DNA of 64,000 nt. Origin: Rebecca billardiae RCC1528. Taxonomy: Eukaryota; Protista; Haptophyta. The notes under the pieces were generated by a model. The model saw only the letters and a program-made list of their open reading frames with translations. It did no database searches and was not told where the DNA came from. A program made the position numbers and the translations under genes. Below, piece by piece: positions 46,941 to 50,265 of the stretch; position 1 is the first letter of the stretch, and the number at the start of each line of letters is the position of its first letter. Location of the stretch: NCBI GenBank assembly GCA_965240325.2, contig OZ251222.1, positions 2,480,001 to 2,544,000 of the forward strand. The letters run 5' to 3'.

Positions 46941-47000
<60 letters not shown>
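46941..47000. repeat. (AT)n microsatellite
   Basis: About 30 perfect AT units. Confidence 0.95.
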
Positions 47001-47005
<5 letters not shown>

Positions 47006-47524
47006 CTCGGGTATTATCCTGTAGCGACCGATGACCGTCAGACGAGGTCCGCCACTCCGCCGACTCCGCGGGCCGCGGGCCGCGTCACACTGCGGTGACT
47101 CGGGCGGTGACAGCAGGACCGCACTGGCCCGTGCGGAGGCAGCCGGAGCCGCGGGCGCGCGGCGCGAACGCGAATGCCGCCGAATGGCGCCCCGATTTGG
47201 CCCGAATTCGAATGGCGGGCCGAATGCGGCCCGTCGCCGGGCCGAGTGCGGGAGTGGCCGCGGCTTCCCGGCGGTCAGGCGGCGGTTGACCCCGGCCTAA
47301 GGTAAAGCCTAAAGGAGACTACAGTCCGGTCGTTGGAGGAGCACATCTCGACACGGAAATCGGCGCGGGATCGCCGCGCCACTGATGATCTGCAATAGCT
47401 CCTAGACCACCCCAGGCGCCTCCCTTGGACGATATGACGGCCAGATGGATCATCAGCCACCCCTCTCACTCTGTCAAGGTCAGTCTGTGAGACAGACGGA
47501 GTGATGCTTGCTCACTGCCGCTGA

Positions 47525-47865: not shown

Positions 47866-48017
47866 CCGAAGTTAGTGGGTGAGCACGCCGAATAAAGACG
47901 AGTGTGCTGGGCGCGAAAATAATAATCGCGCGCCTAAAAAAACCGATGACGATCCCGCGCGCGCTTGAAAACATCCGCCGAGCCACAAAGAGGCGCTGCC
48001 GGACCGCTCGCGCTATC

Positions 48018-49263
48018 ATGGTGGCGCCACGCCTCATTCAGGTCGCCGCGCTGCTCGTGGCCCTCGCCTTGGTGACGCCCTCGGAGTGCAGCAGGCGACA
48101 CCGCCGCCACCGGGATGAGCCTGAACCGACGCCGACCCCTACGCCCACGCCCGTTCCCACACCTGAGCCCCCGCGGCTGCGGACGCCGGCGGCCGCGCCA
48201 GTCACCTACGCGCTGGGATGCGAGGACAACTCGGCGTGGAAGGACATTGATGGGAACGGATGCGACGTGTATGTGAGCGAGGGCTGGTGCGTTGGCTCGT
48301 ACTTCGCCCCAGGGTCCGAGGACAAGGCGGATGCGAACAGCAAGCCCGGGCCGGAGGACAGCTGCTGCGCGTGCGGGCGCGGGCGCGGCGGCTGCCTGCA
48401 GGCGCGCATCGATCAGTACTGCATGGAGCAGGGCGCGGGCGTGGTCGCGCGCAAGGCCCACCTCGTTTGGAACTGCTACGCCTACGTCGGCACCCGCTCG
48501 AGGCGGCAGTGCGTCAACACGGGCGGCTGGGACGAGGACTGCGCCGAGGGCCTCAGCGCGGCGGACGAGCCGGTCAAACACAACGACGCGATCCACGCGC
48601 TGCTGCGCGAGGGCTGCGTCTCGAAGAAGGAGCACGAGGAGCGCAAGCACGAGCGAGAGGCGGCGAAGCGCGAGGAGCACAAGGCGAAGGAGAGCGGCGA
48701 GGTCTACGGCTCGTGCATGCAGGAGGCGATGGACGCGCTCTGCTCGGAGGAGTTTGCGCCGGGCGCCGTCTCGCGCCGCGCGTACGCGCAGTACTACTGC
48801 TGCACCAAGACCGTCGACCCGGCCGAGGCGACGCCCGAGCAGTCGCTCGCGTGCGTGGATAAGAACGGCTACTTTGTCGAGTGCGCGCCGTGCGACACGA
48901 GCGACGAGACCAGCTTCGCCATCATGTCGAAGCAGCTCCGCGCGGTGATGTGGAACGGCTGCAGGAGCAAGCTGAGCGCGCTGCCGAGCGCGCGCGCGGC
49001 GGCGCTCGGCGTGGGCACGGGTGCGCGCAGCCCTCGTGCACGCGCGTGACCGGACAGCGCGGTAAGTCTGCGCGTGCGTCCGCCGTGTCTCGGCGCCGGC
49101 TCACCCCCCTTGCCCCTCCCACCACCCTGCAGGCGCGCTGGCCCGACTGGCGCTGGGCGCGCTGATCGTCGCCTCACTCGCGGTGGCGACGGCGGCCCTC
49201 GTCAGGCGCGCGCGCTCGCTTCGTGCGGCCGAGCACGTGGCAGCGGACGTCGAGCTCGAATGA
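48018..49263 (+). CDS. Type-I membrane Cys-rich protein with two MAR-like repeats (intron 49021-49132)
   Basis: Signal peptide, PT linker, Cys module C.D…W.D..G.GC..Y…CCACG and two homologous Cys repeats. The spliced last exon encodes TM LALGALIVASLAVATAALV plus a short tail and TGA at 49261-49263. Confidence 0.8.
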
Positions 49264-50265
49264 TCGGCAAGACGTTCATCCATGCGCATCGGCCGAGTCC
49301 CAGGTGCGTAGCCTGGACCGGGACTCGCGTTTTGGCACAGGACCACGCCCATCGCTTTGTCGTACGCTGTACCGTGGTCCGCGTGTGCGCCGTGCCCGGC
49401 GCTACTTATAATGCTACTATCTATGCCTAGCTAGCTTGATAGTTCATTGATGATCGTAGTAATTAACTTACGCGCGAGTAGCTATCGTGATATATCATCC
49501 TGCTAGTGTTCGACGAAGGCTTCACTGAGAACTTGCGCGCGGCGGCCCGGCGGCGCGATTCGCGAACATCAACATAAGTATATATATATATATATACTAG
49601 CTACTACGTCTACTAAGCCTGACCGACGACGAATAATCGCGCGACGATATTACTACAGTAGCTAGCAGACCGAATGCGTGCCTGCATCATTCGTCATCAT
49701 CATCAGCGCACTTCATGCGGTGACGATCAGATGGATGCTGATGAGTCAACTTATAAAAGAGTACTTGACGATTCGGATCTGCTGCCACTCTGAGGCGATG
49801 AGACTGGCGGGCTGATCGAGTGAGCCTGACGCCACGGACTCACTGACTCACTGAGACCGTCTGAGACGTGTCGTCAAGCACGGGCTTGAGCGGCCTAGTA
49901 ACGAGTAACGGCCAGTGCTTTCACTAGTGGAACTTGCTGAATCAGAGTTATCAGAGCCGCGCCCCGCTGCCCGGCCGGTCACCGCGGGCTCAGTCAGGCC
50001 GTCCGATGAGCGCGCAGCTTGCTGTATAGTGAGATGAAAAAAAGATTACGCAGTAGTTGATGACGAAGGCCTTCACCGATCGTCTCACTTCTGCCTGCCT
50101 GCCTGACCATGGGCAGCTCTGCGGCGGCGCGCCCCGCGCCGCCCGCGGCGTGCCAGCGTCTGCCGCTGCGCCGCGCCAGCCGGCCGATGGGCTCCTGGCC
50201 TGGGACAGCTGGGTCGCGATTGTCATGGTCGTTGCCTCGCGCGCTAGCTACTGCCTACTGCACAC

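Follow-up and report, generated by a model that had tools for sequence, protein, structure and literature searches.

The DNA considered here is a stretch of 64,000 nucleotides (the window) from the haptophyte alga Rebecca billardiae RCC1528, spanning positions 2,480,001 to 2,544,000 of contig OZ251222.1 in assembly GCA_965240325.2. On its forward strand lies a two-exon gene whose predicted product carries two cysteine-rich repeats that are, with high confidence, distant homologues of the microneme adhesive repeat (MAR) domain of coccidian MIC1 and MIC3. Both repeats lie in a single open reading frame (47904-49049, + strand), within the interval 48390-48962 where a first-pass annotation of this DNA had placed them. 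The motifs it quoted are all present in the translation: CLQARIDQYC, VVARK, WNCY, QCVNTGG and EGC in repeat 1 and CMQEAMDALC, AVSRR, YYCC, ACVDKNG and NGC in repeat 2. The features of the gene, in window coordinates, are as follows.

48018-48092, + strand: start codon and signal peptide, residues 1-25 (from the translation and the starts of homologues)
48093-48215, + strand: linker, basic and then Pro/Thr-rich, residues 26-66 (from the translation; pLDDT <50)
48216-48389, + strand: N-terminal Cys-rich module, residues 67-124, kept in all orthologues
48390-48617, + strand: MAR-like repeat 1, residues 125-200, 76 amino acids, six Cys (from the translation and a fold match)
48618-48707, + strand: charged helical linker (KKEHEERKHEREAAKREEHKAK), with a helix predicted for residues 203-225; kept in orthologues
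48708-48962, + strand: MAR-like repeat 2, residues 231-315, 85 amino acids, eight Cys (from the translation and a fold match)
48963-49020, + strand: short stalk, end of exon 1 (from the translation)
49021-49132, + strand: intron of 112 nt, GT..AG, phase 1 (from the sequence and the Diacronema lutheri gene model)
49133-49263, + strand: exon 2, with a transmembrane helix (49135-49203), RRAR, a tail and the stop codon (49261-49263) (from the translation)

The start codon is likely the ATG at 48018, immediately 5′ of the hydrophobic signal sequence; the homologous proteins begin at the same point, right at the hydrophobic segment, and the DNA upstream of 48018 is AT-rich and resembles a 5′ untranslated region. 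Read through to the unspliced stop, the exon 1 product comprises 343 codons. The splice donor G|GTGCGC at 49020/49021 agrees with the frame of exon 2, which encodes a 23-residue hydrophobic segment, a basic stop-transfer sequence (RRAR) and a 19-residue cytoplasmic tail. Splicing to this exon is supported because four homologues (P0002, P0003, P0004 and P0007) share the same C-terminal transmembrane segment and basic stop-transfer tail, and because the annotated gene of Diacronema lutheri is interrupted by only one intron, which lies at the equivalent place, just 5′ of the transmembrane exon. The signal peptide and the spliced membrane anchor predicted at first pass on the two sides of the repeats are therefore both upheld. 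The gene product is in all likelihood a type I surface membrane protein, its location at the surface being suggested by the signal peptide together with the anchor. All searches and structure predictions described below used exon 1 (48018-49020), or parts of it, as the query.

The two repeats are related to one another (BLASTP E = 2e-5, 29% identity) and are conserved as a pair. A search of 5.8 billion proteins identified seven orthologues in other pavlovophytes, with 47-55% identity and 46 invariant columns; these include Diacronema lutheri KAG8466338.1 and Pavlovales sp. CCMP2436 KAJ1622501.1, as well as MMETSP transcripts. These relatives also mark the source genome as that of a pavlovophyte haptophyte. 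The orthologues and transcripts rule out a chance reading frame in GC-rich DNA. Coccidian contamination is likewise ruled out, both by the occurrence of the family at no fewer than seven loci on different contigs of a 72-Mb genome of ~70% GC and by the orthologues in three named pavlovophytes. No Pfam domain scores above its cut-off in any orthologue. We note that the UniRef entry for the Diacronema orthologue (P0004; A0A8J5XFX3) is labelled ‘Cellulase’ and the NCBI entry ‘hypothetical protein’; neither a glycoside hydrolase nor a carbohydrate-binding module was detected in it, and the name is likely an automatic mis-annotation. On four other pavlovophyte contigs (L003, L005, L006 and L008) the orthologue stands head-to-head with a gene for ribosomal protein L24 (KOW). 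A tblastn search of the whole window found no L24, so the neighborhood of the Rebecca gene differs from those four.

Homology to the MAR domain is most evident when profiles of the algal sequences are compared with proteins of known structure (177,635 PDB sequences, E up to 10). A profile of the two-repeat region from seven species (A2) has Toxoplasma MIC1 (TgMIC1) as its sole match, at E = 0.03 and with both MARs in register; EtMIC3 is not matched. A profile of 16 pavlovophyte domain copies (A4; seven copies of repeat 1, seven of repeat 2 and two paralogues), drawn throughout from high-GC pavlovophyte DNA, matches only TgMIC1, at E = 1.3e-6 and again with both MARs in register, and EtMIC3, at E = 1.1e-3. 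When two environmental copies are included (A3), the values are 1.6e-7 for TgMIC1 and 8.7e-5 for EtMIC3, and the only other matches are to Mia40 (E = 0.28-0.44). The first-pass annotation had recognized in the repeats a Cys/AR/W-x-CY/CVD-x-G pattern of the MAR type, and in the HMMER alignments with MIC1 this pattern is indeed colinear. The signature common to MARs and the algal repeats consists of [LI]Q-x2-[LI]D-x2-C in helix 1, A-R, W-x-C-[YF], C-V-D-x2-G-x4-C and a C-terminal helix ending in G, in the same order.

An exhaustive HMMER search of 1.84 billion representative proteins with A2 returned the family itself and only four distant proteins. Two of these four, the environmental proteins P0009 and P0010 (E = 4e-7 and 4e-6 among the 1.84 billion), are not pavlovophyte, as both are encoded on contigs of 39% GC. 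P0010 exceeds the gathering cut-off of the Pfam model for the MAR domain (PF10564, MAR_sialic_bdg), scoring 27.4 against the required 25.1 bits, and P0009 scores 18.7 bits. A word-indexed search with P0010 returned only P0010, and a search with a further alignment (A5), aimed at coccidian proteins of MIC1 length, returned only the family itself. When repeats are scored as isolated domains, repeat 1 gives sub-threshold PF10564 matches (12.9-18.2 bits) in five of seven family proteins, the window's not among them, and no copy of repeat 2 is matched; every pavlovophyte score lies below the cut-off. The Pfam model thus misses the algal copies, and a rebuilt profile will be needed for any survey.

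To compare folds, AlphaFold2 models were built from an eight-sequence alignment for the whole protein and from an 18-sequence domain alignment for repeat 1 alone. In the whole model, pLDDT is about 70-77 for repeat 1 and 80-90 for repeat 2; repeat 1 modelled alone reaches a pLDDT of 96.8 with a pTM of 0.85. Each modelled repeat consists of a helix, three to four strands and a second helix, and the MAR fold has been described as a distorted β-sheet or barrel with a helix at its N- and C-terminal ends (PMC3192848). Comparison of an AlphaFold model with MIC1 by Foldseek had been set beforehand as a test of the proposed resemblance, and TgMIC1 is at the top of the resulting lists: the four best matches to the whole model are all crystal structures of TgMIC1 (E = 4.5e-4 to 8.8e-4, probability 0.99-1.0), the fifth is the EtMIC3 MAR (E = 0.16) and the remainder have E >1. 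With repeat 1 alone the four best matches are again TgMIC1, with a query-normalized TM-score of up to 0.70.

The same two proteins stand out in VIA-align, which is independent of Foldseek and was run against 48,161 PDB representatives. Repeat 1 aligns with TgMIC1 at Z = 7.9 (root-mean-square deviation 2.0 Å, 72/76 residues) and with EtMIC3 at Z = 7.0 (2.3 Å, 74 residues), the third chain having Z = 3.6. For repeat 2 the corresponding values are Z = 8.3 (2.4 Å, 79 residues), Z = 8.2 (2.6 Å, 81 residues) and, for the third chain, Z = 3.5. TgMIC1 and EtMIC3 are the only chains above Z = 5 for either repeat. A Z of near 8 is by itself middling, and the match is convincing because more than three Z units separate it from the next chain, because it covers the full domain and because it agrees with the sequence result. 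As modelled, both repeats have the MAR fold over nearly their entire length. A Foldseek search of viral structures (BFVD) gave no match, and there is therefore no sign of a viral vector.

The closest known system is the MAR region of TgMIC1 (PDB 2JH1, 2JH7, 3F53 and 3F5A), and in particular its second, type II MAR. Like the window protein, TgMIC1 carries two MAR-fold domains in tandem after its signal peptide, with the helix-1 Cys, A-R, W-x-C-[YF], C-V/A-x3-G-x4-C and the C-terminal helix all colinear with those of the algal repeats. The differences are also considerable. The algal repeats are shorter (76-85 residues), have only 16-22% identity to TgMIC1 and lack both the His-x-Thr (HxT) motif and a counterpart of C6, the Cys of C-V-D-D-C. 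TgMIC1 ends in a galectin-like domain, whereas the window protein has a transmembrane anchor and an N-terminal Cys module, and its host is a free-living alga without micronemes. The type I domain of EtMIC3 (MAR1b, PDB 2LBO) shares the fold of the algal repeats at 21-23% identity, but the algal domains lack its type I insertion, the C2-C3 disulfide, the LxxY contact residues (PMC3192848) and HLT.

The algal repeats can also be placed within the known MAR classes. Type I MARs have an extended insertion in the helix-1/loop region with an extra disulfide, C2-C3 (PMC3192848, PMC5646145), and type II MARs lack the insertion, some of them having a C-terminal β-finger instead (PMC5646145). The spacing from the helix-1 Cys to A-R is 6-9 residues in the algal repeats, 8 in MIC1 MAR2 and 21 in EtMIC3 MAR1b; this segment holds no Cys pair in the algal repeats, and no extension of β-finger length is present. 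The algal domains are thus a minimal, type-II-like MAR core without the type I insertion. The core disulfides of MARs are C1-C4, C5-C7 and C6-C8 (PMC3192848). In the HMMER alignments, algal Cys 2, 3, 4 and 5 fall on MAR C1, C4, C5 and C7, whereas at C6, the second Cys of C-V-D-D-C, the algal repeats have other residues. Conversely, MARs have no counterpart of the first algal Cys, at the start of helix 1, or of the last, in the G-C that follows the final helix. By inference, these two would have to pair with one another in repeat 1, which would fit antiparallel packing of the two helices, and repeat 2 may contain one further pair, between the second Cys of CC and that of A-P-C.

Several observations weigh against the interpretation of the repeats as MAR domains with an adhesive function: (i) neither the window protein nor either isolated repeat matches PF10564, even at E = 10, and phmmer with the whole protein finds no match in the PDB; (ii) the fold evidence cannot count as wholly independent of the sequence evidence, because AlphaFold was trained on the PDB, including MIC1; (iii) the C6-C8 disulfide has no counterpart and, judging from the alignments, appears to have been rewired to the extra terminal Cys and (iv) where MIC1 and EtMIC3 have their HxT motif (HAT and HLT), the aligned residues are P-V-K in repeat 1 and F-A-I in repeat 2, in line with the initial remark that no clear HxT is visible. 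A search of the ESM Atlas with the repeat region also gave no usable match. The resemblance proposed at first pass is nevertheless upheld. Of the two grounds for rejection named at the outset, the lack of a significant profile or structural match does not apply: the Pfam model fails on the window repeats, but the profile of their pavlovophyte relatives finds TgMIC1 and EtMIC3, and the models of both repeats match these same two structures. The other, a different disulfide topology, applies in part, since by alignment two core MAR disulfides of the three are kept and the third appears to be replaced.

Could the resemblance be convergent, the repeats being an unrelated small disulfide-rich α/β domain in which a few motifs around the cysteines are alike by chance? 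Identities of only 16-23% to MIC1 and EtMIC3, the sub-threshold Pfam score of every pavlovophyte copy and the one differing disulfide speak for this. On the other hand, the algal profiles reach TgMIC1 at E values of 1e-6 to 1e-7, while the thousands of Cys-rich chains in the PDB are left unmatched by A4; superposition extends over the whole domain (72-81 of 76-85 residues), and the next chain lies >3 Z units lower; the bridging sequence P0010 lies above the Pfam cut-off; and motif order and spacing are colinear. We consider convergence very improbable.

The question of ligand binding turns largely on the HxT motif. HxT is the sialic-acid-binding motif and is conserved in many, though not all, MARs; in Eimeria MARs its Thr is essential, those with Ser or Glu in its place having failed to bind, whereas a VxT variant binds (PMC5646145). 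At the Thr position the orthologues have K, H, T, T, Q, L and A, with no conserved Thr, and an invariant His follows one residue later. Among the orthologues, A-G-T occurs at the HxT position in only two copies of repeat 1, those of Diacronema and one relative; N-A-T is found there in a paralogue on contig C5 of the Rebecca genome and in P0011. Because the essential Thr is missing in both window repeats, canonical sialic-acid binding by this protein is unlikely, and any ligand site must differ. An H-S-T sequence is present three residues past the fifth conserved Cys in a second paralogue (L018; C-F-K-H-S-T) and in P0010 (L009:427-666; C-V-G-H-S-T). It is not at the position that aligns with the HxT of MARs and may be a coincidence or a shifted motif.

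A six-frame domain-profile search of the genome finds seven loci with, in total, eight significant domain matches; besides that of the window gene, three architectures are represented. The paralogues are as follows.

C30:920247-920489 (L016): signal peptide, one MAR-like head and a (SPPPP)n rod
C16:1911427-1911666 (L018): signal peptide, one MAR-like head and a (SPPPP)n rod
C19:950971-951105 (L020): signal peptide, one MAR-like head and a (SPPPP)n rod
C19:943121-943291 (L021): signal peptide, one MAR-like head and a (SPPPP)n rod
C5:1927672: similar to P0011, with one domain and a transmembrane anchor
C17:1781168-1781404 (L019): a large protein resembling P0012 of Pavlova sp. CCMP459

The two paralogues on C19 are adjoining genes in opposite orientation, about 8 kb apart. 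P0012, the orthologue of the C17 protein, is 1007 residues long and combines two MAR-like domains with a PAN domain (PF00024, 29.4 bits) at its C terminus. The two kinds of module, MAR and PAN/apple, cooperate in Toxoplasma as well, but from separate proteins, MIC1 and MIC4. The MAR-like domain is thus a mobile extracellular building block, used in this lineage in both surface and matrix proteins. The four rod-bearing paralogues, in which a signal peptide precedes one MAR-like head and a long, extensin-like (SPPPP)n rod, recall the surface glycoproteins of green algae, which consist of a globular head on a hydroxyproline-rich rod. The MAR-like head is unrelated to the heads of these hydroxyproline-rich glycoproteins, and the window gene itself has no Pro-rich rod but only a short Pro/Thr linker, together with its transmembrane anchor. 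A direct six-frame scan of the genome with PF10564 gave a single match, of 16.2 bits (C7:1331334-1331486, L013). The protein at that locus has a signal peptide, a segment resembling half of a MAR (C-x8-C ... L-A-R-K ... W-R-C-Y) and then a region with weak similarity to GDP-fucose O-fucosyltransferases (PF10250, 18.1 bits).

Outside the repeats, the window protein offers few points of comparison. The N-terminal module has the pattern C-x-D-x3-W-x-D-x2-G-x2-C-x2-Y ... W-C ... C-C-x-C-G; it matches nothing in Pfam, its nearest relatives in the ESM Atlas are unnamed eukaryotic clusters, most common in diatoms, and its AlphaFold2 model is of low confidence. For the Pro/Thr linker, the sole Pfam signal is the low-complexity PROL5-SMR, below the cut-off. 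The gene is flanked on both sides by (TA)n microsatellites (46950-47030 and 49575-49600), which read IYIYIY when translated.

The genome also encodes enzymes that could supply a ligand. A NeuB sialic-acid-synthase gene of two exons (145.7 and 51.8 bits) lies at C5:1184648-1185474 (L023/L024), and there are 32 over-threshold matches to the GT29 sialyltransferase family at about 25 places. From NeuB and the expanded GT29 family it is probable that the alga both synthesizes a nonulosonic acid and transfers it. Kdn is an established product of haptophytes (PMC6200933) and, taken with these genes, this makes an endogenous acidic-sugar ligand conceivable, on circumstantial grounds. One reading is that the repeats are working sialic-acid or Kdn lectins despite the lack of HxT, with nonulosonic-acid glycans of the alga itself, of its prey or of a partner as ligands. 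Besides the synthesis and transfer genes and the haptophyte Kdn, the Thr residues of A-G-T in Diacronema and its relative and of N-A-T in the C5 paralogue and P0011 favor this idea, as does the binding of the Eimeria VxT variant. The window repeats, however, carry Lys and Ile where the Thr would be, and no Thr is conserved across the orthologues, and we regard such an activity as improbable.

It is also possible that the repeats have kept the MAR fold without being lectins at all and act as disulfide-stapled structural or protein–protein heads in the cell covering or matrix, much as the heads of hydroxyproline-rich glycoproteins do. Eimeria MARs without the Thr bind neither fetuin nor cells and yet are expressed (PMC5646145), both window repeats lack this residue, and in four paralogues a single domain is fused to an extensin-like rod. 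A role other than that of a lectin is harder to reconcile with the literature searched, in which every MAR with a reported ligand binds a sugar, or with the conservation in repeat 1, across species, of the face around the invariant His beside the HxT position; the genome's rich sialylation-type machinery, moreover, could supply ligands. This alternative deserves to be kept in view, although we think it somewhat unlikely.

The interpretation that we favor, with a confidence at or barely above even, is that the window protein acts at the cell surface as an adhesin or receptor that binds glycans through a non-canonical site. It would be a type I membrane glycoprotein whose ectodomain consists of the Cys-rich module and two MAR-fold domains separated by the charged helix. 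The two MAR heads would be held off the membrane, giving bivalent binding, and the chemistry of ligand contact would differ from that of the canonical His-x-Thr sialic-acid site. An adhesive or matrix role is favored because the same domain heads at least four secreted (SPPPP)n proteins and occurs in the large protein on C17. What the data show is the gene and its architecture, the homology to MARs with the fold seen in the models, and the multigene family, whereas the disulfide pairing, the location at the surface and the lectin function are inferred. The use of such an adhesin in prey capture or haptonema adhesion, raised at first pass, is speculative.

MARs have been described as restricted to coccidial parasites, where they serve as a tool for invading sialylated host cells (PMC5646145). 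A literature search for MARs outside the Apicomplexa, including Chromera, found no report, with incomplete coverage of full texts, so an earlier report is possible. What is new here is a small multigene family of MAR-fold domains in free-living photosynthetic haptophytes, outside the alveolates. The presence of the fold in haptophytes implies that it is far older than the Apicomplexa or has moved between lineages, and it overturns the view of the MAR as a coccidian-only, lineage-specific invasion tool. For parasitologists, the algal proteins provide an outgroup against which the origin of sialic-acid binding on the MAR scaffold can be studied. A bolder possibility, which we consider a long shot, is that the MAR is an old eukaryotic nonulosonic-acid lectin module, with which pavlovophytes read their own Kdn- or sialic-acid-capped surface glycans, made by NeuB and the expanded GT29 enzymes, and which coccidians redirected to the sialoglycans of their hosts; if true, a unicellular alga would harbor its own ‘sialic acid plus reader’ recognition system. 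For algal biology, the finding puts a name to a family of surface and matrix proteins that otherwise lack annotation and, because the genome has genes for the synthesis and transfer of sialic acid or Kdn, links them to a testable class of ligands.

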